Assembly (NCBI RefSeq): GCF_016432865.1
Contig: NC_067398.1
Span: 78,802,001 to 78,866,000, forward strand
Reading direction: 5' to 3'
From: Antechinus flavipes
Lineage: Eukaryota
DNA: 64,000 bases
Positions 10,730-28,605 of this stretch are shown piece after piece. The notes beneath the pieces are model-generated. The model searched no databases, was not told the DNA's origin, and saw only the letters and a list, made by a program, of their open reading frames with translations. The translations under genes were made by a program, and so were the position numbers. Every line of letters starts with the position of its first letter. The first letter of the stretch is position 1.

Positions 10730-11350
10730 GTTCTAGATAGGGAGAAGACCGCGAGAGGCTGGGAGAAAACCGGAAAGATCGACGGTACCGTACGGCTGGA
10801 AGAGAGCGTGCCTCGAGGCCGGCGCAGCTCAGGGTCCCCAGCGGGACTGGGAGACCAGACCTCGGACTGCGCCCGGAGGAGGGAGGGAAAGAGATTTGCG
10901 CGGAGAGAAACCGGGGCGGAAGGGGCGGAGCCGAGAGAAGCCCGGGAAGGAGGGGTGGTGAGGGGCCTGGGTAGGGGCGGGCCGAAAGAAGCTCGATAGG
11001 AGGGACGGGGCCAGAGGCTCTGTGAGGGCGGAGCTTAGGAGAAGTGGCAGCTCCACCCTCCGGCCGGGGCGCGTCCCCTGATGCATCTCGTGGTCCAGCG
11101 CGCTGTGCCCTGACACTAAGCTCGGTGCTCCCAGGCCGAGGAGAGGAGGGCATGGCCCCAGAAGCTCCTGTTCCGGTAAGAGCGGCTACAGAGGCCCGGG
11201 CCAAGGGAGGCGGAGCCCTTGAGGAGCTCCCGGCCTGCGGGAGGGACAGCTCCCGGCCTTAGGGTCCGGCACTCGAGGATTCCGGATCCTGAGCTGGGAG
11301 GGATCAGAAAGAAGCTATCGAGACCTCACCCTTTGTTTTACAGGGCGGGA
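10730..11350 (+). promoter_or_regulatory. CpG-island promoter and exon 1 region of gene 2
   Basis: CpG-rich; multiple GGGGCGG boxes at ~10900-11035; gagggcATGg at 11152; donor GTAAGA at 11176; intron start homologous to genes 1 and 3 (gcctgcgggagggacagctc). Confidence 0.8.
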
Positions 11351-14300
11351 AACTGAGGCCCAGAGAGATGGGTCACTCGGCTAAGCCGGAGTGCTGACAG
11401 GGGATTTGATCCCATGCCTCCCAGACCCCAACCCAGTGCCTCCCAGTCCTAACTCCGAGTGGGCGAAGAGGGCTCGCGGTAGAGGGGACTCCGCCAGGGT
11501 CAGGGAGAGGTAGGATTCTTGTAGCCACACAGTCAGTGGGCGCGCACGCAGGCACTGTGCTGCTAAGCCTTGACATGCAAAGAAAGGCCCTCCACATAGA
11601 GGGAAGCCGCAGAAGCCACAGGGGCCATAGAGAATAGAGTGGAAAGCCCCTCCTAGGATGGAAGGCCTCGCATTTTGAGGCACCAGGAAAGCCAGTGGGA
11701 AGAGTTGTTTACTTTGGGATCCCTGAGGTCATAGAGTATAGTGTGCTTTCTAGAGCCCAAGTTGGGGTGCCAAAATGTACCCTTGGGACTAGCCCTCTCT
11801 GGAGGATCTTGGGACCAGCCTGAGCCCTTGGGCTTACAAGAGGAGTGATGGATAAGGCAGGGACCCTCCTGGATGGTCAGATATGGAGTCCATTTGTTTC
11901 AAGATCTCTCAGCCCTAAATACCTTAGTACAATTACATCACTACAACACGTGCTGACTCTAGTATGATTACATCACCACAGCACACTGCTCATGTGCTAA
12001 CTATAAGCACCTGCTATTAATATGTAAATGCCTCTTTTACTGTTGTATCTCTGCTTCAGGTAAAACACAGATTGTCACACCCTCTCCCCCACACTCCACT
12101 TGTCAGGACGGCTGAGACACCCCCTCCTCCAAGGGGAGATGAGAGCCAAACCATTTTCAGCAAGTTCCATCTGGGCTAAAGCGGCTTCTACCTCACCCAT
12201 AGTTCCCCCACTGTCTGTGGCTCTACAATAGAGAGCTTGCTGCAGCCTTTTGACCTGGGGAGTTACCAGGTTGCAAGTAACCCTCTTGGCCCCTCTTGGG
12301 AACAAGGACCAGAGAGGAGAGAGACCTTTGGCCAGCACCCACCATTGGGACACTGCCACAGAACTGGCAGGAGGTGACCAGGTGGATAGAGGAGAAAGGG
12401 GGTTACCCATGCCATCTGCTAGGAAGAGGGCATCAGGTGGCTCTGTGGCCACGCCGGGTTGAAGATACCCTTTGGGACAGGTTAGCCAGTAGGCATTGGG
12501 AGGCAGCTGAGAAGTCTGGGTTGGATAAGTAGATCTGAGAACCATCTGCATAGACATGATAGTGAAGTCTTTGGGAACTGATGGAATAGATAAAGAAATA
12601 GAAAAGAAGTTATTAGGGGGACGCCTGTAGCAACAATCCCGGAGAAAGGAGTGGTTAAGTCAGGTGGGAAGAGAAGCAGCCTGAAAACTTAGAGAGAGGA
12701 CTCAAGGAGAGGAGGATGGACAGTGTCAGAGCCACAGGGGGTCACCAATGGGGAGGAATGAGAAAAAGCCATTACATTTGAGGACTTTGGAGACTTCACT
12801 TTGAGTTGGATGATGAGGACAGAAATCAGGCACCGAATGTAGAAAGTTGTCCGCTCAAAGGAGGCAAAATACCGGACAGTAGCCAAATCCCAAAGGGGCA
12901 GTTTGCTGGAGAAGATAGGATAGAATGGGATCCAAAATGCAGGAAGAGGGGACTGCCTCTTCACAAGGAGAAAGGACATCAATACCTGGGAGAAGGAGGG
13001 GAAGGATGGGGAGGAAGGGGGAGGCATCCAAGTGAGGAAAGACAAGGAGAGGACAAGTAGAAGCTCTCAGCAAATGGTCCATATTTTTCAGCAAAATATG
13101 AAGCAAGCTTCTCAGCTGAGAGGATCCAAAGAAGAGGAGCCATGGGAATTTTGAGATAGGACTGCAGGTGAGGGCCCATAATTTTAGGGAAAGGGAGAGT
13201 TGAGACATTAGGCTTCAGGGGCAGAGACTCAGCCGCCTCGGAGTTTAGGGATTTAGAGCAGGGCTGCAGCTGGAAATTATCTCTTGGTCCACTTGCTAGA
13301 GAGGCAGGTAATTTTCCTGAGGTTCCCAGGTTATTCCCCTGCAGTTTTCCTCAACAAACCTTTCACAGAGTGCATTCTCTTTTACCATTCTCTGCCCATA
13401 TTGTTGCTACGATACACTTGGGAAGAAAAGCCTTGTAGTTTTGGAAAATGAACACTCAGAGCTTCTCTAGTTGCCTGTTATAAAAGAATTTAAAACAAAC
13501 CTGGTGGGAATCCGTTTTTAGCATCTACATTGTATGAAAGAAATGGAATAGAAAAAGATATTTTCTGAATTAGTGATGCAAAATGAAAGTATGACTCATG
13601 CTTGTGGTTCTAGGTGGCTGTGACATTTGATGATGTGACCATGTATTTCACAGAGCAGGAGTGGGAGACCTTGGAGGAGTGGCAAAAGGAGCTTTACAAG
13701 CATGTCATGAAGACCAACTATGAGACCTTGGTCTCACTGGGTAAGATGTTTTCATCGGGAACTTTGATGGTGTCTTATAGAATCAGATTCAATATCATCC
13801 AGCTCTTGTATCACAACCTGAAAGTTCTTCTAGAAACCCCATCCTGATTGGTCCTTTCCACAATTTCACTTTATTTTCAAGTTTTATTATTACTTTTGTT
13901 TTTTAACAATAGTAATTTCTCAGTATCCCTTGTAACAAAGAAAACCAGTTAAGCAAAGCAAATCAACAAACTGACCTCAAATATAGTGTAGGTAACATTC
14001 TACCTTGAGCTTCTCTTTATTTACTGAGTAGAGGGAAATGTTTTATGTCATCTGTTCTCCTATATCAAGGTTGGACATTGCAATTCATATGAATGTTAAT
14101 TTATATAATTGTCATTCTCTGTCATTTCTATAAGTTTTCCACTGTTTTCTCTGAATTCCTTCATCTTCTTTTTTTTTTAATGGAGCAGTAATATTTCATT
14201 ACTTCAGTATACCATTTGTTCACCAATCAATAGCTACCTGTCTTGTTTACAGTTTTGTGTTAACACAGATACTACAGATATTTTAGTTTATATAGCTTTT

Positions 14301-17300
14301 GTGAAAATCTCTGGACCTTAATGACTAGCTGGATAGGTAGCAATATTATTGAATTCAATAAATTTCCGAAGTACAAGATACAATGCAAAAAAGAAAGAGT
14401 AAATTTTAATAGCAACCAACATTATCTACTTGAAATTAATCATCTGGAATTGGAAAAGTTTGTTTAGTGCCCCTACTAAGGCTGTCATGCTGGTCTAACT
14501 TGGCCCCCTTGCCATTTCAGATCTCTAAAGCTTTATTTATTATACCCTATAGCATTTTTTTCCAGTGGTGTTTACTGAGCCTGGCTAATATTAATCTCTG
14601 CCATGAGATCTCAGGTACTATTATAAATCATCTCTCTCACTGCTTCTCATTTCAGAGTCCCCAAAATATCTACTATTAAAAATAGCAACTCAAATTTTTA
14701 GCTTGCCATGTATCCTACAGTTTTCCATTTTAACAGCTTTAGTGTATGATAACTCAAAAACAAATTTTTCCTAGTATGTCCAACAAGAATTTCATTATGT
14801 CTTCCTATGCAGCAGCATGGAAAAACATTAACTCCACTAGTCAATTGATTGATGAATGCTTGTTTCATGCTTACTGTGAAAGGCACTTTATTAAATTCTG
14901 TAGGGAAAACAGAAGCATAAGCTACAATATGTATTTGTCCTCATGAAGCTTATATTCTGTTTGGGGAGATCATTAACAGTATATAAACATATAAAGACAT
15001 AACAATACAAAAGATCAATAACAGTTCACTTCAGCAATAAAATACATATCAGGAGGCAGTACCTTATTAATTGTCAAATATATAAGTGCAACCAATATAC
15101 AGAAAAAGAAAAAAATAATTGTGGTCTTGAGCATGCTAGAAAGAATACACAGAGGAGGATAATTAGGTCTAAAATATATATTTATATTTGATGAGCAAAA
15201 ATCGCAAAAAATCCAAAGAGGATGTAAAATGATAGTGCCCAATAATTTGAACCAAAAGTTATTTCCTGGCAACTAAATTACTGGCTGTAAAGGAAATCAA
15301 AAAATAAAAATAATTATAATTGGTAGTATTTCATCACTGTTCACAAAAGGTGTGAAGAATTTAATGGGCAACTTAAAGCCAAATAGATTAGGCATCTCTC
15401 TAGGAACCTAATACCAAGATGCAAACAGTCATTCTGATTTTATCTCCATAAAATCTCCATTTATTATAGTGTTCACAAAACTTGTGCTTCTGGTGACCTA
15501 AAGGAAAACAAACTTATTTACCATTTTGTGACCTGTTTGTCCAGGCTATGCCATTTCCAAACCAGATTTGATAACCCAGATTGAACAAGGGGAAGAACCA
15601 TTCGTCAGAGATCAGGGACGCTTGAGTACAAGGGAACTGGCCATTGGACACAGAGGCAGCTGTTTTCTGGTGAGTGTGAAAAAGTGAAAGGAGTGAAATT
15701 CAAGAGGCCATCTTCAGGTTCTCCTCCTTCTAGGACTTAAATCTTCCTGTCATGTCCAACTACTTTGGGTTTGATTTAGGATTGGCCCTAGCTTCATCAG
15801 CTATCAGAGCTCCAGACCCCAAACAATTTCACTATCATATGTGTCATACACAAACAGTAGCTCTATCCTGTTCTTCTTCTGATCAAGAAACCCAAGATTC
15901 TGAAGTTGCTTAGAGTTTTTCCAGTTACTTAGAGTTCAGCTTATTTTTAATAATCTTTTCATTTATATTGATTGTATTTATTTGTTTAGTTCCACTGAGT
16001 TAATTCTGCATCAATAGACAAAAATCTTTTCTTTTTCCTGACTTCCTCATAATCAGCCTTTCCCAAATTTAGTATAATTCTATTACATTCATTTACCATA
16101 GGGTGGTTTTTTAGCCATTTCCCAATTGATTGGCAGCCACTTTGTTTCCAGTCTTTTGCTGCCACAAAAAGTGCTACTATAAATATTGATGTACACACAC
16201 ACACACACACACACTGTCTGTCTCTCTTCTCTCTTTCACCTTAATCTAGCATACCAAACAGAAATATCATACATCTTTCCTACATATCTATATTAAATGA
16301 CTAATATTTGATAATCATTCTTACTTTGTGAATGACACTTTAAATTCTAAAGATATATAGAAGCGCACCTCACCAGAAGTATTTATCACCATAAATTACA
16401 TTTTACTTTTCAAAGAACTTGTCTACTTAGGGATATCTAAAATGTAAACAAGCAGGACATAAATATTTGTAAATGCAAATAATAATGTACTACCTCAGTA
16501 TAAGAGAAATCAGAAGGCAATGCAATCATTTCTTCCCAAACACATATATCCAGCAATAACTGCTATAAATGTGTAGTTGATATAAAGAACACTGTTGTCC
16601 ATAGTGGATTCCAAAAAGGCTTCACAAAAGAATCAAGAAGTTTTCAAAAGCAAGATTTGAATTTAAAAGTTGCAAAATGTTTAAACAGGATGTGAAATAT
16701 AATGGCTGATAAACAGAAAATTTCTGATGACTTTCATCATAAAAATTTTGAGAAAATGTAGGTTTTTTGTGTGTAGGGGTTATTTTATTCATTGCATTTA
16801 TATTTATATACTTATCATATAGTAGGCATTTAATAACGTATTGACTATTGATTAGGATAGAAACTAGTTTTGAAGGGATTAAATTGAACCGTGGTAATCT
16901 GTGTTTATCAGATACTCTATCTCCAGTACTACATCCCAGTGTTAGAAACTTAACTCAAGGCCCAAGTAATTTTCTCCACTTGTAGTCTGTATTTTACAAC
17001 TTACATTCCTATATTGTCTAGGAATAACTTGGTGTGATAGAAACTGGGAAGAACATAGAGAATATAGAAGAACTATAGAATTGAGAGAATTAAGAAATCC
17101 AGATTCAAATGATAGCTCATATTATATACAGTATGGTTCATGAAAAAGTCAGAATCATAACATGTCTATGAACTTCAGTTTCCTTATCTTTAAAATCGGG
17201 ATAATATACTTGGACTGCCAATTTCACAAGGTTGTATTAATCAGAATGTTTTAAAAAACCTTAAAGCATCATATAATATGAATTTGAGGGAGTTGATGCA

Positions 17301-20300
17301 GTTTCTAGCTATAAACAGCACAGCCCCATCCCACTGAGTCAATGAGCAATAGAAACTGCCACCAAGAACATTATTGGGAATATTTCAGTTGAGGTCAGTT
17401 ACTTTCAAACCATAGTGATTTGCAGATTTGTTTTGTGACAGACCAGCACATCTTGAATCCCCTTGAGCCAACCTTTAGGAATTTTCGAAACAAAAGCAAT
17501 TTTAGCTGACTTTATTAAATCAATATAAACTTCACAGTCCTTTTAAAAGTGCAGGCAATGTGGGGAATCAAACAACTCGTTGGTAGCTAAGAGCCAAATG
17601 AAGGAGACAGCACTCTGCTACAGTGGGAGCACCCAAATCCTGGGTTTATATATATATACGTGTGTGTGTGTGTGTGTTCCTGTATCTTGTACCTTAATCT
17701 GAATTAAAAGAAACAAAACTGCTTCTTTGTGGCCTCTTCAGGCTGTGCCATCTCCAAGCCAGACTCAATAACCCAGATTGAACAAGAAGAAAAGCCAGTC
17801 ATCAGCCATCAGGGGAACTCGGAAACAGGAGGTTATGCAGTCTGCTTCAGTGATAATGAGCATCCTGATGTGAAGAGCATAGAAGTGCAGCCATTTGGGG
17901 GTGAGTTAGGAGGAGGGGAAAGAGTGAAACTCAAGGTGGCACATTCTGATTTTTGCTCCCTAATAAGTCTTGCTTTCTTGATGGTCTGAGCTAGAACCTG
18001 ATATCAGGGCAACACTGAGCTTCAAGAGATCTCATAAAGAAATCATTCAGGGAAGGCTACAAGGCATCTTTACTTTAATCTTTACTTATACACACAGAGA
18101 TGAGTTCTGTTCTATTTTTCCTATCATGATTGGGAAATCTGAACTCCTGAATTCCAAGAAGTAAAATGAAACTTGTCATTGGTTAAGGAGGCCAGTGTTC
18201 AGCATCGGTAGGAAAGACATTACCTCATTTTTTGCTGTTGCTTGCCAATAGATAAATAAGTCAAGGACTCTATAGGGGTTAAAATTTAAGATTTTGCCCC
18301 CTATGAAGAAGGGTTGGCTTCCCTGTTAAATCTGCAAGTTAAAGGTTTTTTTCCTATTAAGCTAATGGAATTACCATTTTTTTTAATTATCAAAAGTAAG
18401 CATACTTGAAATAAAAAATAAGATAAAAGCCCTAAGAGAAGGGTGATTGTATCCATTTCAAGACAAAAAGATTGTGCTTATTTGATTTTCTTTCCCAAGA
18501 GTAGCTTCACCACGTCCAGTAACCAAAGTTTTCTTCTGAAAACATTTGTTCCAACATGAGTAAGAATAAAGAAAGAACAATCTTGACCTTGTCCTGGAGC
18601 CCAGTTTCAAATCTGGGCAGGTAGGAAGAAGGCAGAGAGTTAATTCTTCCTGATCTTTTTCTTCTTATGACTATTAGAGAGACTGTACAGATTTGTAGAA
18701 AGAGAAGTGTTCCTCAGAGTGCCTCTCCACCTTTTCCTTTTATCAGCTGTGTGATTATGGGCAACTTATATCTCTCTAAACTTCAATTTCTCATCTATAA
18801 ATAAGAATCACATTTAGGTTCTATACAAAATATTCTATTACAGTACCTCATTAATCACTCTGAACATCAAATAAGGTAATATACGTAACATGCACTACAT
18901 ATGTTATTACATGTCTGTTATTACAAAATATGTGGCAGGAACTTTATAGCACTATATCAACATGAAACAAGCCTATTGCTCATAAACATTCTCCATGTCT
19001 TCATGTCTTTCTTCAGGGAGAGAAATCTTTGGATTCACAAGTTTGAGGCTTAATGTTACAAGAGGTGTCAAAGCGTTATGTCTTTTGGGTCATGGCTCAC
19101 CTGGTTTATGTGCATCCAATTTAAATCTTCTCTAAACAGTGTGATTATATTTGGTTATATTAATGAAGAAGTGAATTTAAGGAAGGAATGGGAATTAAAT
19201 TTGAGAAAGACAGGCAGGGAATTTCAGTACTGGCCAAGTCAGGTAAAGACATGGAAAGATAAATTCAAGAAACATTTTAAATGTCTTACATTTATATAGA
19301 GCTTTATATCCACAAAAGACTATGCAGCATATCATTTGGTTCACACAACAACCCTGATCTTAATCCAGCTGAGGTTTAGAGTAGTCACACTCTACTGGAA
19401 TTCAAATCCAGTCATTAAATACCAGTTTCAGTGCACTTTCTAATACTCCATGTTATGCAGAGACCTGAATCAGTGCTAGGAGAGAGGAAAATATCAATAA
19501 ACCATGATGCTAAGACTGTTCCTGGATCTAACTCTGACCATCTCTCCTTAGCCCTTAGCCTCCTAAATCAATTATTTTCTCTCATCACAAGCTCCATTCC
19601 CCTCTCCATTCTCAAGACTATTACTCCTTTTCTGATGTCACATTCGTCCCTCACTGAAGCAAGGAAATCCATCCAAAGGCTTTCCCTCTTCTACTCCAAA
19701 CTTCCTGTTCATTTCCAAATTCTCCCATACTCCCATCTCACCCAAGTACCTTGCCTCTCATTGTACTGAAAAAATTAAGGCCACAATCTCCTCCTCTTTT
19801 TTTTCTCTCTAGCCCCTTGACAATATTCCCTATTCTCTTTTTCTTAATTCTACTTTTTTGATACTGAGGTGACCTTTATTCCTTCCCCTCCTATCTTTTC
19901 CATCAGACTACCCCTGCTCTCATCTGTTTTCACACTTTCTAAACTTACACTTTGTCGCTATCTATTGTTTCTTCCCCTAGTGCCTCCAAACATATCCAAC
20001 TCTCTTCAGTCATCAAAAAAATCCTCATAGAACCTTACGGTTTCCTCCTAGATATCTCCTTTTCCCCCAACCTCCTAGGAAAAAATTATCCCCACTTGTT
20101 ACCTCTTCTTTCTTCACCCTCACTCATTCCTCATCCCTTTGCAATTGGGCTTCTCGCTCCCTTCTAAGGAAACTGCCCTTTTTAAAATTTCTAATGATCT
20201 AATATCCAATTCAGGTCCTTTTTTTTTCAGTCCTCTTCTGCTGTGTGACTCTGTAGTCTTTGACACTGCTGACCACTCTCTCTCTTCTTTGGGCTTTTGT

Positions 20301-23300
20301 GACACTACCTCTCCTACTTCTACCTACTTATCCTCCACAATATATCCCAAGACTTTTACTCCAGACCATCTTCTCTCCACATTTTGTCTCTATCACATGG
20401 ATTTAATTATCCTTCTGCAGATGTCTCCAAGATCTGGCTCCCCAGCTCTAGTGTCTTTCCTGAGTTTTCCAAAATGCCCACTGAACACTTTAGACTGGAT
20501 TTTCATGGACATCTCAAGCCCCAAATGTCCAAAACAGAAGGCATTATCTTCCTTCCCACCTCCCTTCTTGCAGACTTGCCTTTCTTTGCTAAGGATGCCA
20601 CCATTCCTGGATCTCGTCAGTGTTATCCTCAAAGTCTTAGTCTCCCTCACCCATTTACCAATAACTTGTCTCCCTGCCTCAAGACCATGCCAGCTGCAGC
20701 CCAGCCCCCAGATACCACTGCCAAAAGAGCATTTCAGGAGCTCGGAAGTAAACTGTCTCTGGGTTTAAGGCTCTTCGTAGCCTGGCCCGAACCTCTCCTT
20801 CCAAATTCCTTATGCCTTCCTTCTCTTCCCTCTCACCAAAGTGACCTCCTCCATGTCCCTCCTCTAAGCCTTTGCCTTAGCTGCTCTCAATCCCTGAAAT
20901 ACTCTCATTTCTAGCCTCACCTCTGCTTTCTAGGATCCCTCATTTCTTTCAGAACTCCAGCTCCTAGTGCCCTCCCTCCCTATCTTTGTTTTTACTTTCC
21001 TTGTATTATTAGATGTTTATTCTAAATCTCTTAAATATGTATTTGTCTTTCCCCACAGAATTTAAGGCCCTTACATTAGGAACATTTTTTCTTTGTTTCC
21101 CCTGAGGCTGGCACATATAGGTACTTAGTGCTTGTTGCTTATGTGATTGATAGTAGTAGTTTCATAGATTTCAAGTTGCATGAGACCTGAGATCATAAAA
21201 TCAGCCCTGTTGTTTTACAGATAAGGCAAAGCAATCTCATTCAGAAGTAAATGCCAATTGATCCATGAACCCATGGTCACACAGGGAGTAAACATCAGAG
21301 CCAAGATTTAAACCTGGTTGCTGAGTCCCAAGTCCCTTGGCAAAGTCTCTTGGACCTTCTTGTAGAGCAGCCATGAGTTGCTGATCAGGTCTTTGTTTTT
21401 CATTCCAGGGGATTCTGGATCTTCAAGACAAGAAGAGAGCCACAGACATGATCTTCAAAACCAGAACTGGGCTGGGTCCTTGCCATTCCACTGCAGTGTG
21501 TGCAGCAAGGGCTTCACTCACAAGTCTCAACTAGCCAATCACGTTAGAATTCACAGGCCAAAAAAACACTTCCAGTGCACCAAGTACGAAAAGAATTTTG
21601 CCCAAAAGACCCAACTGCTCCGGCACCAGCACCTGCAAACGGGGGAGAGGCCCTTCCAGTGCTCTGAGTGTGACAAGAGCTTCCCAGCAAAGGGGGACAT
21701 GAAGCAGCCTGAAAACTTAGAGAGAGGACTCAAGGAGAAGAGGAGGATGGACAGGAGGTCATCAACGGTGAGGAATGAGAAAAAGCCATTACATTTGAGG
21801 ACTTTGGAGACTTCATTTTGAGTTGGATGATGAGGACAGAAATCAGGCACCGAATGTAGAAAGTTGTCCACTCAAAGGAGGCAAAATACAGGACAGTAGC
21901 CAAATCCCAAAGGGGCAGTTTGCTGGAGAAGATAGGATAGAATGGGATCCAAAATGCAGGAAGAGGGGACTGCCTCTTCACAAGGAGAAAGGACATCAAT
22001 ACCTGGGAGAAAGAGGGGAAGGAGGGGAAGGAAAGAGGGGAGGCATCCAAGTGAGGAGAGACAAGGAGAGGATAAGTAGAAGCTCTCAGCAAATGGTCCA
22101 TATTTTTCAGCAAAATATGAAGCAAGCTTCTCAGCTAAGAGGAGCCATGGGAATTTTGAGATAGGACTGCAGGTGAGGGCCCATAATTTTAGGGAAAGGG
22201 AGAGTTGAGACATTAGGCTTCAGGGGCAGAGACTCAGCCGCCTCGGAGTTTAGGGATTTAGAGCAGAGCTGCAGCTGGAAATTATCTCTTGGTCCACTTG
22301 CTAGAGAGGCAGGTAATTTTCCTGAGGTTCCCAGGTTATTCCCCTGCAGTTTTCCTCAACAAACCTTTCACAGAGTGCATTCTCTTTTACCATTCTCTGC
22401 CCATATTGTTGCTACCACACACTTGGGAAGAAAAGCCTTGTAGTCTTGGAAAATGAACACTCAGAGCTTCTCTAGTTGCCTGTAATAAAAGAATTTAAAA
22501 CAAACCTGGTGGGAATCCGTTTTTAGCATCTACATTGTATGAAAGAAATGGAATAGAAAAAGATATTTTCTGAATTAGTGATGCAAAATGAAAGTATGAC
22601 TCATGCTTGTGGTTCCAGGTGGCTGTGACATTTGATGATGTGACCATGTATTTCACAGAGCAGGAGTGGGAGACCTTGGAGGAGTGGCAAAAGGAGCTTT
22701 ACAAGCATGTCATGAAGACCAACTATGAGACCTTGGTCTCACTGGGTAAGATGTTTTCATCGGGAACTTTGATGGTGTCTTATAGAATCAGATTCAATAT
22801 CATCCAGCTCTTGTATCACAACCTGAAAGTTCTTCTAGAAACCCCATCCTGATTGGTCCTTTCCACAATTTCACTTTATTTTCAAGTTTTATTATTACTT
22901 TTGTTTTTTAACAATAGTAATTTCTCAGTATCCCTTGTAACAAAGAAAACCAGTTAAGCAAAGCAAATCAACAAACTGACCTCAAATATAGTGTAGGTAA
23001 CATTCTACCTTGAGCTTCTCTTTATTTACTGAGTAGAGGGAAATGTTTTATGTCATCTGTTCTCCTATATCAAGGTTGGACATTGCAATTCATATGAATG
23101 TTAATTTATGTAATTGTCATTCTCTGTCATTTCTATAAGTTTTCCACTGTTTTCTCTGAATTCCTTCATCTTCTATTTTTTTTAATGGAACAGTAATATT
23201 TCATTACTTCAGTATACCATTTGTTCACCAATCAGTAGCTACCTGTCTTGTTTACAGTTTTGTGTTAACACAGATACTACAGATATTTTAGTTTATATAG

Positions 23301-25185
23301 CTTTTGTGAAAATCTCTGGACCTTAATGACTAGCTGGATAGGTAGCAATATTATTGAATTCAATAAATTTCCGAAGTACAAGATACAATGCAAAAAAGAA
23401 AGAGTAAATTTTAATAGCAACCAACATTATTTACTTGAAATTAATCATCTGGAATTGGAAAAGTGTTTAGTGCACCTACTAAGGCTGTCATGCTGGTCTA
23501 ACTTGGCCCCCTTGCCATTTCAGATCTCTAAAGCTTTATTTATTATACCCTATAGCATTTTTTTCCAGTGGTGTTTACTGAGCCTGGCTAATATTAATCT
23601 CTGCCATGAGATCTCAGGTACTATTACAAATCATCTCTCTCACTGCTTCTCATTTCAGAGTCCCCAAAATATCTACTATTAAAAATAGCAACTCAAATTT
23701 TTAGCTTGCCATGTATCCTACAGTTTTCCATTTTAACAGCTTTAGTGTATGATAACTCAAAAACAAATTTTTCCTAGTATGTCCAACAAGAATTTCATTA
23801 TGTCTTCCTATGCAGCAGCATGGAAAAACATTAACTCCACTAGTCAATTGATTGATGAATGCTTGTTTCATGCTTACTGGGAAAGGCACTTTATTAAATT
23901 CTGTAGGGAAAACAGAAGCATAAGCTACAATATATATTTGTCCTCATGGACCTTATATTCTGTTTGGGGAGATCATTAACAGTATATAAACATATAAAGA
24001 CATAACAATACAAAAGATCAATAACAGTTCACTTCAGCAATAAAATACATGTCAGGAGGCAGTACCTTATTAATTGTCAAAAAATCCAAAGAGGATATAA
24101 AATGATAGTGACCAATAATTTGAACCAAAAGTTATTTCCTGGCAACTAAGTTACTGGCTGTGAAGGAAATCAAAAAATAAAAATAATTATAATTGGTAGT
24201 ATTTCATCACTGTTCACAAAAGGTGTGAAGAATTTAATGGGCAACTTAAAGCCAAATAGGTTAGGCATCTCTCTAGGAACCTAATGCCAAGATGCAGACA
24301 GTCATTCTGTTTTATATTTCCATAAAATCTCCATTTATTATAGTCTTCTCAAAACTTGTGCTTCTGGTGACCTAAAGGAAAACAAACTTATTTGCCATTT
24401 TGTGACCTGTTTGTCCAGGCTATGCCATTTCCAAACCAGATTTGATAACCCAGATTGAACAAGGGGAAGAACCATTCGTCAGAGATCAGGGACGCTTGAG
24501 TACAAGGGAACTGGCCATTGGTTCCAGGGCTGATGACCCTTGTGGCTTGAAGAGGACACAGAGGCAGCTGTTTTCTGGTGAGTGTGAAAAAGTGAAAGGA
24601 GTGAAACTCAAGAGGCCATCTTCAGGTTCTCCTCCTTCTAGACTTAAATCTTCCTGTCATGTCCAACTGCTTTGGGTTTGATTTTAGGGCTGGTCCTAGC
24701 TTCAAGAGATCAACTACCAGAACTCCAGACCCCAAACAATTTCACTATCATATGTGTCATACACAAACAGGAGCTCTATCCTGTTCTTCTTCTGATCAAG
24801 AAACCCAAGATTCTGAAGTTGGAGAAAGAAAAGCAAACCTAAATATGACAGTCAAATGTTAGCCTCATGAGGGTAGGTTCTATCATGTACTGTTAACTTC
24901 ATTATTGATTTTCCAGTTACTTAGAGTTCAGCTTATTTTTAAAAATCTTTCCATTCATATTGTGTATGTTTATTCTTTTAGTTCCACCTATTTTAATTCT
25001 GCATCAATAGACAAAAATCTTTTCTTTTTGCTGACTTCCTCATAATCAGCTTTTCCCAAATTCAGTATAATTCTATTACATTCATTTACTATAGGGTGGT
25101 TTTTTAGCCATTTCTCAATTGATTGGCAGCCACTTTGTTTCCATTCTTTTGCTACCACAAAAAAATGCTACTATAAATATTGATG

Positions 25186-25222
<37 letters not shown>

Positions 25223-25228
25223 TCTCTC

Positions 25229-25262
<34 letters not shown>

Positions 25263-28200
25263 ACCTTTAACTAGTATACCAAACAGGAATATCATACATC
25301 TTTTCTGCCTATCTATATCAAATGACTAATATTTGATAATCATTCCTACTTTGTGAACGACACTTTAAATTCTAAAGCTATATAAGTGTGTACATCGCCA
25401 GAAGAATTTATCACCATTATTACATTGTATTTTTCAAAGAACTTGTCTACTTAGGGATACCTAAAATGTAAACAAGCAAGACATAAATATTTGTAAATGC
25501 AAATAATAATGCACTACCTCAGTATAAGAGAAATCAGAAGGCCATGCAATCATTTCTTGCCAAACACATATATCCAGCAATAATTGCTATAAATGTGCAG
25601 TTGATATAAAGAACACTGTTGTCCATAGTGGATTCCAAAAAGGCTTCACAAAAGAATCAGGAAGTTTTTAAAAGCAAGATTTTACTTTAATAGTTGCAAA
25701 AAGTTCCAACAGGATATGAAATAAATAATACCTGATAAAAGCCAGAAAATTTCTGATGACCTTCATCATAATAGTTTTGAGAAAATGTAGGTTTTTTGTG
25801 TGTAGGGATTTTTTTATTCATTGCATTTGTATCTATATATCTATCATATAGTAGGCATTTAATAACTTATTATTAATTAGGATAGAAACTAGATTTGAAG
25901 GCATTAAATTGAACCAGGACAATCTCTGCTTATCAGATTCCCCATCTCCAGTACTACCTCCCAGTGTTGGAAGCTTAACTCAAGGCCCAAGTAATTTTTT
26001 CAACCTATAGTCTATACTTTACAACTTACACTCATATACTGTCTAGGAACAATTTAGTTTGATAGAAACTGGGAAGAACATAGCCTAGAAAGAATTAGGA
26101 AACCCAGATTTAACTGATAGCTCAAATTATATGTAGTATGGACCATGAACAAGTCACAATTACATCATGTCTATGAGCCTCAGTTTCCTGTCTTTAAAAT
26201 GGGGAGGGGCAGCTAGGTGGAGCAATGGATAAAGCAGCAGCCCTGAAGTCAGAAGGACCTGAGTTCAAATCTGGTCCCAGACACTTAACACTTCCTGTCT
26301 GTATAACCCTGAGCAAGTCACTTAACCCCAATTGCCTCAGCAAATAAATAAATAAATAAATGAAATAGGGATGATATACTTGGACTGTCAATTTCACAAG
26401 GTTGTATTAATCAGAATGTTTTAAAAATCTTAAAGCATCATATAATATGAATTTGAGGGAGTTGATGCAGTTTCTAGTTCTAAACAGCACAGCCCCATCC
26501 CACTGAGTCAATGAGCAATAGAAACTGCCACCAAGAACATTATTGGGAATATTTCAGTTGAGGTCAGTTACTTTCAAACCATAGTGATTTGCAGATTTGT
26601 TTTGTGACAGACCAGCACATCTTGAATCCCCTTGAGCCAACCTTTAGGAATTTTCGGAACAAAAGCAATTTTAGCTGACTTTATTAAATCAACATAAACT
26701 TCACAGTCCTTTTTTTTTTTCCAAGTCCTGCACTTTTGTGCAGGCAGTGTGGGAAATCAAACAACTCGTTGGTAGCTAAGAGCCAAATGAAGGAGACAGC
26801 ACTCTGCTTCAGTGGGAGCCCCCAAATCCTAGGTTTATGTATATACATGTGTGTGTGTGTGTGTGTTCCTGTATCTTGTACCTTAATCTGAATTAAAAGA
26901 AACAAAACTGCTTCTTTGTGGCCTCTTCAGGCTGTGCCATCTCCAAGCCAGACTCAATAACCCAGATTGAACAAGGAGAAAAGCCAGTCATCAGCCATCA
27001 GGGGAACTCAGAAACAGGAGGTTATGCAGTCTGCTTCAGTGATAATGAGCATCTTGATGTGAAGAGCATAGAAGTGCAGCCATTTGGGGGTGAGTTAGGA
27101 GGAGGGGAAAGAGTGAAACTCAAGGTGGCACATTCTGATTTTTGCTCCCTAATAAGTCTTGCTTTCTTGATAGTCTGAGCTAGAACCTGATATCAGGGCA
27201 ACACTGAGCTTCAAGAGATCTCATAAAGAAATCATTCAGGGAAGGCTACAAGGCATCTTTACTTTAATCTTTACTTAAACACACAGAGATGAGTTCTGTT
27301 CTATTTTTCCTATCATGATTGGGAAATCTGAACTCCTGAATTCCAAGAAGTAAAATGAAACTTGTCATTGGTTGAGGAAGCCAGTGTTCAGCATCGGTAG
27401 GAAAGACATTACCTCATTTTTTGCTGTTGCTTGCCAATAGATAAATAAGTCAAGGACTCTATAGGGGTTAAAATTTAAGATTTTGCCCCCTATGAAGAAG
27501 GGTTGGCTTCCCTGTTAAATCTGCAAATTAGGAAAAAGGCAAAGGTTTTTTTCCTATTAAGCTAATGGAATTACCATTTTTTTAATTATCAAAAGTAAGC
27601 ATATTTGAAATAAAAAATAAGATAAAAGCCCTAAGAGAAGGGTGATTGTATCCATTTCAGGACAAAAAGATTGTGCTTATCTGATTTTCTTTCCCAAAAG
27701 TAAGTTCACCATGTCCAGTAACCAAAGTTTTTTCCTGAAAACATATGTTCCAACATGAGTGCCCATGGCCACATAGGGAGTAAGCATCAGAGCCAAGACT
27801 TAAACCTAGTAACTGGTCCAAAGGTCCTCAAAGTCTCTTGAACCTTCTCTCAGGCAGCCATGAGTTGCTGACCAGGTCTTTGTTTTTCATTCCAGGGGAT
27901 TCTGAATCTTCAAGACAAGAGGAGAGCCACAGACATGATCTTCAAAACCAGAACTGGGCTGGGCCCTTGCCATTCCACTGCAGTGTGTGCAGCAAGGGCT
28001 TCACCCACAAGTCTCAACTAGCCAATCACATTAGAGTTCACAGGCCAAAAAAACACTTCCAGTGCACTGAATGTGAAAAGAACTTTGCCCAAAAGTCCCG
28101 ACTGCTCCGACACCAGCGCCTGCACACGGGGGAGAGGCCCTTCCAGTGCCCTGAGTGTGACAAGAGCTTCCACCAGAAGGGCCATCTGCTCAAGCACCTG

Positions 28201-28605
28201 CCCCTGCACACAGGGGAGAGACCCTTCCAATGCCCCGAGTGTGACAAGAGCTTCCGAGCAAAGGGGGACCTGAAGGCCCACCAGCGCCGGCACAGGGAGG
28301 AGAAGCCATTCTCCTGCAGCGAGTGTGGGAAGGGCTTCACCACGCATCATTACCTCACTGATCACATCAGAATACACACCGGGGAGAAGCCCTTCCACTG
28401 CCCCGAGTGTGGCAAGAGCTTCCGCATGAAAGCGGACATGAGAGTCCACCAGCGCAGACACAGCAAGGCCAGGTCGTTCTGCTGCAGCGAGTGCGAGAAG
28501 GCCTTCCCCAAGCAGTCTGAACTCACAGACCACAGCAAGGTGCACACCAAGAAACAGCACTACAAGGGCCTGCTCTGTGGACTGATGGACCTGGACTGGG
28601 GCTGA
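11152..28605 (+). CDS. KRAB-C2H2 zinc-finger gene 2 (ZNF786-like) with internally duplicated KRAB modules; simplest intact product 392 aa, 7 fingers
   Basis: Exon 1 11152-11175 (MAPEAPVP) joined to 22619-22745 (KRAB-A), 24419-24577 (KRAB-B a), 26931-27089 (KRAB-B b) and 27896-28605 (7 C2H2, ends [10 protein letters not shown]) gives 1179 nt in frame. This is the only promoter/exon 1 found upstream of either module. Which exons are actually used is not known. Confidence 0.75.
12570..13215 (-). mobile_element. L2 LINE RT-region fragment in intron 1 of gene 2 (duplicated at ~21705-22215)
   Basis: Minus-strand remnants of the L2 'HSTETALxKV...NG.FS' region; + strand gaggaatgagaaaaagccattacatttg. 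Confidence 0.65.
15950..16190 (-). mobile_element. L1 ORF2 C-terminus/3' fragment (duplicated at ~24950-25190)
   Basis: Minus-strand translation [25 protein letters not shown] resembles the L1 ORF2 C-terminus. Confidence 0.75.
19431..20920 (+). mobile_element. L2 LINE ORF2 (RT) remnant
   Basis: Translation [13 protein letters not shown]...VFDTADHSL resembles the L2 RT motif STETALxKVTNDL...AFDTVDH; pyrimidine-rich sense strand. Confidence 0.8.
22619..28605 (+). CDS. Second, intact KRAB-A + 2x KRAB-B + 7-finger module of gene 2 (no promoter or exon 1 of its own)
   Basis: Exons 22619-22745, 24419-24577, 26931-27089, 27896-28605; canonical AG/GT, correct phases, no stops. Confidence 0.88.
26206..26362 (+). 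mobile_element. WSINE1-type tRNA SINE, present only in duplicate copy 2
   Basis: GGGGCAGCTAGGTGG...ccccaattgcctcagc plus (AAAT)n tail; imperfect TSD aaatgggga/aaataggga; empty site at ~17195 in copy 1. Confidence 0.88.

Follow-up and report, generated by a model that had tools for sequence, protein, structure and literature searches.

Among mammalian transcription factors no family is larger or changes faster than that of the KRAB zinc-finger genes, and the origin of new domain layouts in it is little known. Domain gain by internal duplication is familiar, and so are splice sites taken from repeats; in transposable-element exonisation, a general phenomenon, a repeat supplies the splice site. 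KRAB zinc-finger proteins carry "one or two KRAB domains" (bioRxiv 10.1101/2024.05.20.595046). Two KRAB boxes in one protein are recorded for ZNF333 (Tian et al. 2002, in the reference list of PMC8479281), for ZNF274, in which both KRAB regions bind KAP1 in vitro (PMC2999557), and for ZFP28, the two KRABs of which have opposite effects (bioRxiv 10.1101/2020.09.09.288324). The locus described here lies in a stretch of 64,000 nucleotides (the window) from Antechinus flavipes (NCBI RefSeq assembly GCF_016432865.1, contig NC_067398.1, positions 78,802,001 to 78,866,000, forward strand). The gene under study is the second of four KRAB zinc-finger paralogues in the window, and its orthologues are named ZNF425/ZNF786-like by NCBI/UniProt. 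A tandem duplication inside this gene has joined a truncated finger exon to a repeat, and the composite exon (the junction exon) leads in frame to a second KRAB-A exon. An earlier reading of the letters of the window (the original prediction) had suggested that this could be a double-KRAB gene being born by exonisation of the duplication breakpoint. The analysis reported here places the event further back: an old dasyurid duplication, the breakpoint of which was probably exonised in frame, gave a double-KRAB open reading frame (ORF) that is now partly decayed in Antechinus.

Results

The junction exon and the open frames in Antechinus

The coordinates given in the original prediction, the total of 1824 nt (607 aa) and the phase-0 donor ACG/GTGAGG (slashes mark exon boundaries) were all reproduced from the sequence. 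The junction exon begins at the acceptor ...cattccag/GGGATT at 21409 and ends at the donor TCAACG/GTGAGG at 21767/21768, and its phase-0 exit fits the phase-0 acceptor at 22619. Its finger 1 is intact and its finger 2 lacks a Cys and a His; a truncated hybrid of fingers 3 and 4 and a repeat-derived tail of 63 nt follow. One C2H2 finger in it is scored by Pfam. At its acceptor it does not differ from the real finger exon. Donors were scored with a crude position matrix based on textbook frequencies; on this scale the junction donor reached 4.6 bits, compared with 3.3-6.2 for the real donors of the gene, and ranked in the top 1.2% of the GTs of the window. An AATAAA motif is located at 22484-22489, between the junction exon and the second KRAB-A exon, and could end copy-1 transcripts. 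Unspliced read-through of the junction exon meets a stop at about 21819.

The eight-exon chain that had been proposed is open over 1824 nt (607 aa) with the terminal stop only. To this extent the proposal stood; the chain leaves out exon 15545-15669, the splice sites of which are intact. Within copy 1 this exon corresponds to the orthodox KRAB-B exon, and its two splice sites match those of the working twin exactly. A 34-bp deletion in it brings the all-exon transcript to a stop at codon 101. The 607-aa protein would therefore require that the exon be skipped, and in Antechinus it would be confined to transcripts in which this happens. A usable in-frame alternative donor that could rescue the exon was looked for, and none was found. 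The longest ORF of the all-exon transcript is exactly the annotated product of 407 aa. The seven middle exons can be included or skipped in 128 combinations; 24 of these, the proposed chain among them, are open from the ATG of exon 1 to the final stop.

For Antechinus alone, the probability of an open, in-phase exon was estimated at ~0.45 x ~1/3-1/2 x 1/3. The finger part stays open 45% of the time under random substitutions at the observed number, and the repeat tail is open in one of three frames. The caveat of the original prediction that a given phase arises by chance one time in three was well placed, since in this species alone the fit is only a mild coincidence. Once the data from other species are added, the open, in-phase exon appears to go beyond chance.

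One duplication in three dasyurid genera

The window was compared with DNA from Sarcophilus (L002 from assembly GCA_048593225.1 and L005 from the reference assembly mSarHar1.11), Sminthopsis (L004) and Dromiciops (L003). Dromiciops was the only outgroup represented by DNA; wallaby and wombat were represented by protein only. Antechinus, Sarcophilus and Sminthopsis all belong to the Dasyuridae. The duplication is collinear over the junction in both assemblies of Sarcophilus and is present in Sminthopsis, and Dromiciops has a single copy. An assembly artefact was ruled out by the presence of the duplication in four assemblies of three species. Since the three junction copies share their flanks, the loss of one finger and the derived motif SFPAKG (SFRAKG in finger 4), they go back to a single duplication event before the three genera split. 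An intron segment present in copy 1 only is identical at 0.927 between Antechinus and Sarcophilus, at 0.907 between Antechinus and Sminthopsis and at 0.908 between Sarcophilus and Sminthopsis, which makes Sminthopsis the outgroup to the other two.

A double-KRAB protein of the architecture proposed for Antechinus is annotated in Sminthopsis crassicaudata. This protein, XP_074138805.1 (822 aa; LOC141551258, uncharacterized), falls into the 90%-identity cluster of the Antechinus product XP_051840530.1. Its order is exon 1, KRAB-A, B, B, degenerate fingers, the junction /VAVTFDD, KRAB-A, B, B and seven fingers, and two KRAB stretches are recognized in it by Pfam. The nine exons of Sminthopsis have canonical splice sites and are open over 1977 nt (658 aa) from the orthologous ATG; these 658 aa are the C-terminal 658 aa of XP_074138805.1. 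The model has a further 164 aa from three upstream exons (L004 6001-7769) that are open into exon 1; this extension is probably translated 5' untranslated region, the frame being open by chance. Two KRAB boxes are accordingly found in one predicted ORF in Antechinus (607 aa, with exon 15545-15669 skipped) and in Sminthopsis (658 aa, with all exons).

Copy 1 is in a different state in each species. In Sminthopsis all of it is intact. In Sarcophilus there is one real loss of 1 nt in a G run just before the junction, leading to ...SFPAKGT and a stop. In Antechinus the junction exon is open and in phase, the donor is weakened at position -2, and the 34-bp deletion closes the default transcript; the copy-1 KRAB-B exon has its intact 159 nt in Sarcophilus and Sminthopsis. 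The original prediction had named frameshifts in sister species as evidence that would speak against it, and the outcome is divided: Sarcophilus is frameshifted and Sminthopsis is open. A gene in the course of being born in Antechinus is not what the comparison indicates, the duplication and its junction being common to three genera. Nor is the Antechinus state an advancing one, as the all-exon ORF is broken by the 34-bp deletion and no double-KRAB product is annotated there by NCBI.

Three lesions in Sarcophilus (a frameshift in the first KRAB-A exon and two 1-nt losses in the junction exon) were considered on the basis of L002, and one of them is confirmed by the reference L005. In GCA_048593225.1, losses of 1 nt in homopolymers occur in the first KRAB-A exon and before the junction donor (L002 12505-12630 and 20365-20736). 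The reference mSarHar1.11 (L005 14711 and 22605-22977) is free of these extra losses beyond the one shared junction loss. Between the two copies in GCA_048593225.1, 13 of 24 indels are 1 nt long; this excess suggests homopolymer errors, and the two dropped lesions are probably assembly errors or polymorphisms.

Polarity of the donor, the phase and the start codon

The original prediction had noted that the upstream counterpart of the exon tail has no GT and carries 14 additional bp. Both observations were correct (CCAATGGGGAGG at 12745-12756 without GT; TGTCAGAGCCACAG at 12724-12737); the history that had been drawn from them has to be revised. A GT is present in the upstream copy of Sminthopsis and in all three junction copies (AAG/GTGAGG, AAG/GTAAGG and ACG/GTGAGG), and the T is present in the related repeat copies of Dromiciops. 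The donor is therefore ancestral and was not gained, as a caveat of the prediction itself had allowed. It was lost twice from upstream copies, by a T to G change in Antechinus and by deletion of the T in Sarcophilus.

The 7-nt stretch GGGAGGT precedes the donor in both Sminthopsis copies, in the upstream copy of Sarcophilus and in the junction copy of the Sarcophilus reference. It reads GAGAGGT in the repeat outgroup and has 6 nt in the Antechinus upstream copy. In the alignment of the junction exons, that of Antechinus has one gap of 15 columns relative to Sminthopsis and Sarcophilus. From these alignments the ancestral junction exon is reconstructed at 374 nt, in phase 0 since the duplication, with 15 nt lost later and in frame in Antechinus. 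The supposed phase-shifting deletion of 14 bp is replaced by one in-frame deletion of 15 nt relative to the ancestral junction copy; the appearance of "14 bp, phase 2" arose because the Antechinus upstream copy had lost 1 nt of its own. A history of two steps in Antechinus (a 1-nt loss followed by a 14-bp loss) was rejected, as Sminthopsis and the Sarcophilus reference retain the 7-nt form.

The ATG at 21699 arose by a C-to-A change found in Antechinus only. The exon tail, labelled L2-derived in the original prediction, is an interspersed repeat, copies of which are located at L003 14411-14858 and 18549-19088 in Dromiciops; since these two related copies lie at different sites of the Dromiciops locus, the tail segment is repeat-derived.

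Gene conversion and selection

Over most of the unit, copy 1 and copy 2 of a species share 97-100% identity, compared with 87-95% between orthologues. The KRAB-A exons are identical at 127 of 127 positions within Antechinus and within Sminthopsis. This is the pattern of copies that evolve in concert by gene conversion. Because of this concerted evolution, intact copy-1 KRAB exons and splice sites are in themselves no evidence of selection on a protein. The segments 15908-17195 and 24900-26365 form the only part in which the paralogues (82-92%) are more diverged than the orthologues; this part has escaped gene conversion in Antechinus and Sarcophilus.

In the fingers of the junction exon, 8 of the lineage-specific changes are synonymous and 18 are non-synonymous, with zinc ligands lost among them, compared with 10 synonymous and 3 non-synonymous changes in the real finger exon (Fisher p = 0.015). 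The fingers of the junction exon thus evolve like neutral sequence. The whole terminal exon is constrained in all three species, with synonymous/non-synonymous counts of 5/3, 9/4 and 7/2.

The junction exon has lost 15 nt in Antechinus, 6 nt and 15 nt in Sminthopsis, and 1 nt in Sarcophilus (in both assemblies); the frame survives in the first two species and is lost through the 1-nt change in the third. Among 164 intron indels of up to 30 nt at this locus, 20% are multiples of three, and the probability of finding three or more of the four junction-exon indels in frame is 0.027-0.051. All three junction copies still have the donor, versus one of the three upstream copies. These small numbers suggest selection on the frame and the splice site, not on the residues.

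Gene models as transcript evidence

XP_051840530.1 (407 aa) corresponds, residue for residue, to the ORF from ATG 21699 via the donor at 21767 into 22619 (/VAVTFDD) and on to the stop. As this protein starts within the junction exon, the NCBI model uses the 21767>22619 splice. The NCBI models of Sminthopsis and Sarcophilus splice at the same junction donor. Exonisation of the breakpoint, as originally proposed, is supported by the models of the three species, from which we infer splicing in vivo. Neither a longer Antechinus product nor a coding sequence over copy 1 is on record at NCBI. A search for assembled RNA-seq contigs, in the form of short ORFs spanning the junction peptide, yielded no Antechinus fragment, and when the junction exon was run as a profile against the whole library, poly-zinc-finger proteins swamped the matches and nothing specific emerged.

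In the Sarcophilus model XP_031821489.1 (1188 aa, L005 1001-29887) the upstream paralogue is fused to the gene under study. The model is threaded through the frameshifted junction exon by means of internal acceptors in the junction exon and in the second KRAB-A exon, and it looks like an annotation artefact.

Structure of the locus

Each of the four paralogous genes of the window has a KRAB-A exon, one or more KRAB-B exons and one finger exon. The features of the second gene are compiled in Table 1. It has the traits of a KRAB C2H2 zinc-finger gene, namely a KRAB box and tandem fingers with TGEKP-type linkers in one terminal exon. Pfam PF01352 (KRAB) matches exon 13614-13739 with E = 5.9e-20. 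Pfam lists zf-C2H2 and zf-H2C2_2 for the protein of this gene, and both were scored on the Sminthopsis orthologue. The terminal finger exon is 100% identical over 27898-28602 to XP_051840530.1, "zinc finger protein 425-like" of Antechinus flavipes, which maps to chromosome CM028217.1 of GCA_016432865.2. The Sminthopsis counterpart of exon 1 is located at L004 7746-7769.

Table 1. Features of the duplicated KRAB zinc-finger gene; positions are those of the window.
Feature	Position	Strand	Remarks
Exon 1	11152..11175	+	start codon of the gene (MAPEAPVP); behind the sole CpG-rich promoter region; outside the duplicated unit
Copy 1 of the intragenic tandem duplication	12673..21704	+	from self-BLAST; from a repeat in intron 1 to inside finger 4
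Upstream ("parental") counterpart of the junction-exon tail	12724..12758	+	with 14 bp TGTCAGAGCCACAG; without 1 nt of the ancestral GGGAGGT; donor T gone (GGGAGG)
KRAB-A exon, copy 1	13614..13740	+	127/127 nt identical to 22619-22745
KRAB-B exon, copy 1	15545..15669	+	125 nt versus 159; Antechinus-specific 34-bp deletion; acceptor and donor intact; inclusion shifts the frame
Second KRAB-B-like exon, copy 1	17742..17900	+	156/159 nt identical to 26931-27089
Junction exon	21409..21767	+	359 nt; phase 1 to phase 0
Antechinus-specific ATG	21699..21701	+	CTG in Sarcophilus and in finger 4; NCBI start of the 407-aa product
Duplication breakpoint	21701..21704	+	GAAG, a microhomology of 4 bp shared by finger 4 (28243...) and the intron-1 repeat (12673...)
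Splice donor GTGAGG	21768..21773	+	carried by the repeat; ancestral; in all three dasyurid junction copies
KRAB-A exon, copy 2	22619..22745	+	acceptor phase 0
KRAB-B exon, copy 2	24419..24577	+	the orthodox one; closest to the single KRAB-B exon of the paralogues
Second KRAB-B-like exon, copy 2	26931..27089	+	
Terminal exon, complete	27896..28605	+	7 C2H2 fingers; purifying selection

Self-BLAST aligned 12673-18561 with 21701-27760, and 21270-21694 with 27762-28181. The sequence at the junction, ...TTCCCAGCAAAGGGGGACATGAAG, matches finger 4 (28243: ...TTCCGAGCAAAGGGGGACCTGAAG) and not finger 3; copy 1 is therefore short of one finger unit of 84 nt. The segment 18561-21270, which makes up about 2.7 kb of the last intron, occurs in copy 1 and in Dromiciops and is gone from copy 2 in the three dasyurids; this distribution dates its deletion from copy 2 to soon after the duplication. 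Two successive 159-nt KRAB-B-like exons (24419-24577 and 26931-27089) are present in this gene versus one in the three paralogues. Both are present in the proteins of wallaby, wombat and Dromiciops, which makes the second one an older exon duplication; Pfam scores no match on it. A SINE-like (short interspersed nuclear element) repeat of about 155 nt occupies 26204-26360 in a copy-2 intron, and about 20 copies of it occur on both strands of the 33-kb Dromiciops locus.

Discussion

The data are probably best explained by the following course of events. In a ZNF425/786-like KRAB gene, one intragenic tandem duplication occurred before Sminthopsis left the lineage of Antechinus and Sarcophilus. 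The duplicated unit begins in the intron-1 repeat and ends midway through finger 4, and a microhomology of 4 bp marks the join. The frame of the truncated finger exon ran open into the repeat, which already held a good GT donor in phase 0. Because an open frame met a pre-existing phase-0 donor, a single event made a spliceable, in-frame internal exon. The resulting transcript, from a single promoter, would encode KRAB-A/B/B, degenerate fingers, a linker, KRAB-A/B/B and seven fingers. In each species, gene conversion maintains near identity with copy 2 in the KRAB exons of copy 1 and at every splice site. The in-frame junction may have been the condition on which the duplication was tolerated, because the copy-1 exons are likely to be included by default, and selection on the frame alone may hold the junction exon open. 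In Antechinus the junction exon would be spliced in vivo to the second KRAB-A exon, and the conserved seven-finger protein would also have to be made from shorter in-frame paths or from ATG 21699.

Several observations weigh against this history. Gene conversion alone explains the intact copy-1 KRAB exons, and conservation of the frame is read from four indels (p ~0.03-0.05). Copy 1 contains a frameshift in two of the three species, and the seven-finger exon is still constrained there; reading through copy 1 is for that reason not essential, and Antechinus and Sarcophilus should make a working protein by another in-frame path. Candidate paths in Antechinus are skipping of the damaged exon (607 aa), splicing from the damaged exon to the second KRAB-A exon (476 aa), skipping of copy 1 (392 aa) and a start at 21699 (407 aa). 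The junction donor is weaker in Antechinus, with ACG against AAG at position -2 (4.6 bits versus 6.8 and 7.3 in the other two species). The transcript evidence consists of NCBI gene models, and Gnomon is able to chain in-frame exons without reads; the contorted model XP_031821489.1 lowers the trust to be placed in them.

A rival account is in our view a serious minority possibility: copy 1 is a dead relic, and an ordinary single-KRAB protein of 392 aa is made by splicing exon 1 to copy 2, or by mixing one KRAB-A exon with downstream exons. Inclusion of the junction exon would then be noise or yield substrates of nonsense-mediated decay, its open frame would be due to chance and gene conversion, and the NCBI models to computational chaining. 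Eleven single-KRAB paths are open, among them exon 1, second KRAB-A, B, B and terminal exon (392 aa), and one submitter's model of Sarcophilus omits copy 1. The fingers of the junction exon are neutral, their part of the exon would stay open under random substitution in 45% of cases, and Sarcophilus and Antechinus are each frameshifted in copy 1 with the terminal exon constrained. Such a relic is hard to reconcile with splice sites that are identical to functional ones and transcribed first, with use of the junction donor by the models of three species, and with the retention of this donor in every junction copy versus its loss from two of three upstream copies. The three in-frame indels among four, against a background of 20%, and the freedom from lesions of about 800 nt of copy-1 coding exons in Sminthopsis likewise argue against it. 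An improbable third account makes the 407-aa single-KRAB protein from ATG 21699 the working Antechinus product, with the junction exon as a new first coding exon; either transcription would start inside copy 1, or the ATG would be used through downstream initiation. It draws on the exact match of XP_051840530.1 to the ORF from that ATG, on the restriction of the ATG to Antechinus and on the absence of an annotated coding sequence over copy 1. The same 407 aa are the longest ORF of the interrupted all-exon transcript, as an annotation pipeline would pick; no CpG-rich promoter was seen near 21 kb, and the ATG has only a moderate context and lies 725 nt downstream of an upstream ORF of 101 codons. 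A recent innovation in Antechinus, in which a newly gained GT donor and the loss of 14 bp turned phase 2 into phase 0, is very improbable. The Antechinus upstream copy taken by itself, without GT and with 14 extra bp, gives that impression. Against it stand the GT of the Sminthopsis upstream copy and of all junction copies together with the T of the repeat outgroup, the ancestral exon of 374 nt that was already in phase 0, the single in-frame loss of 15 nt in Antechinus with an independent 1-nt loss in the upstream copy, and the annotation of the architecture in Sminthopsis.

A further and rather doubtful proposal can be made for the function of the duplication. Gene conversion would hold the copy-1 splice sites at the strength of the real ones, and the junction exon would be a frame-only spacer, maintained because the copy-1 exons could not be skipped efficiently. 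The protein would then be functional as a double-KRAB repressor, its recruitment of cofactors being doubled or altered. If this holds, the states of Antechinus (34-bp lesion and new ATG 21699) and Sarcophilus (1-nt frameshift) would represent two independent escapes from a frame-only trap, and selection would have held an otherwise neutral exon open over the whole history of the dasyurid family. The locus can be used to ask whether translation is forced to read through exons that were duplicated together with perfect splice sites. With three fates in three genera it also provides a natural series for the question whether a second KRAB alters repression. The duplication moreover explains why the NCBI models of one orthologous gene are so unlike each other (407, 822 and 1188 aa). 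The origin of a two-KRAB layout can be read here base by base, from the microhomology breakpoint and the waiting repeat donor to the in-phase exon and the later gene conversion.

Comparison with known systems

The double-KRAB layout itself is already known; the present locus is a lineage-specific case with an unusually legible origin, which is unnamed in the annotation of Sminthopsis. The gene shares with the ZNF425/ZNF786-like genes of its cluster the KRAB-A exon, the KRAB-B exon(s), the single terminal finger exon and the conserved C-terminal tail ...LMDLDWG, and differs from them by an internal duplication present only in the dasyurids examined. A close counterpart is the orthologous Sminthopsis gene of XP_074138805.1; it shares the duplication and the junction exon, and its double-KRAB ORF of nine exons is intact. 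It differs in the retained 159-nt KRAB-B exon of copy 1, in the junction deletions of -6 and -15 and in the upstream extension of 164 aa. As in transposable-element exonisation, a donor in an intronic repeat has become an exon boundary. Here, in contrast, no insertion or mutation made the site; the duplication put an acceptor and an open frame before a donor that already existed. With ZNF333, ZNF274 and ZFP28 the gene has in common two KRAB boxes in one C2H2 zinc-finger protein, in the present case as a predicted ORF. It is distinguished from them by KRAB-A exons that are identical within species through gene conversion, by the degenerate fingers and the repeat-derived linker between the two boxes, and by an origin that can be traced to one breakpoint.

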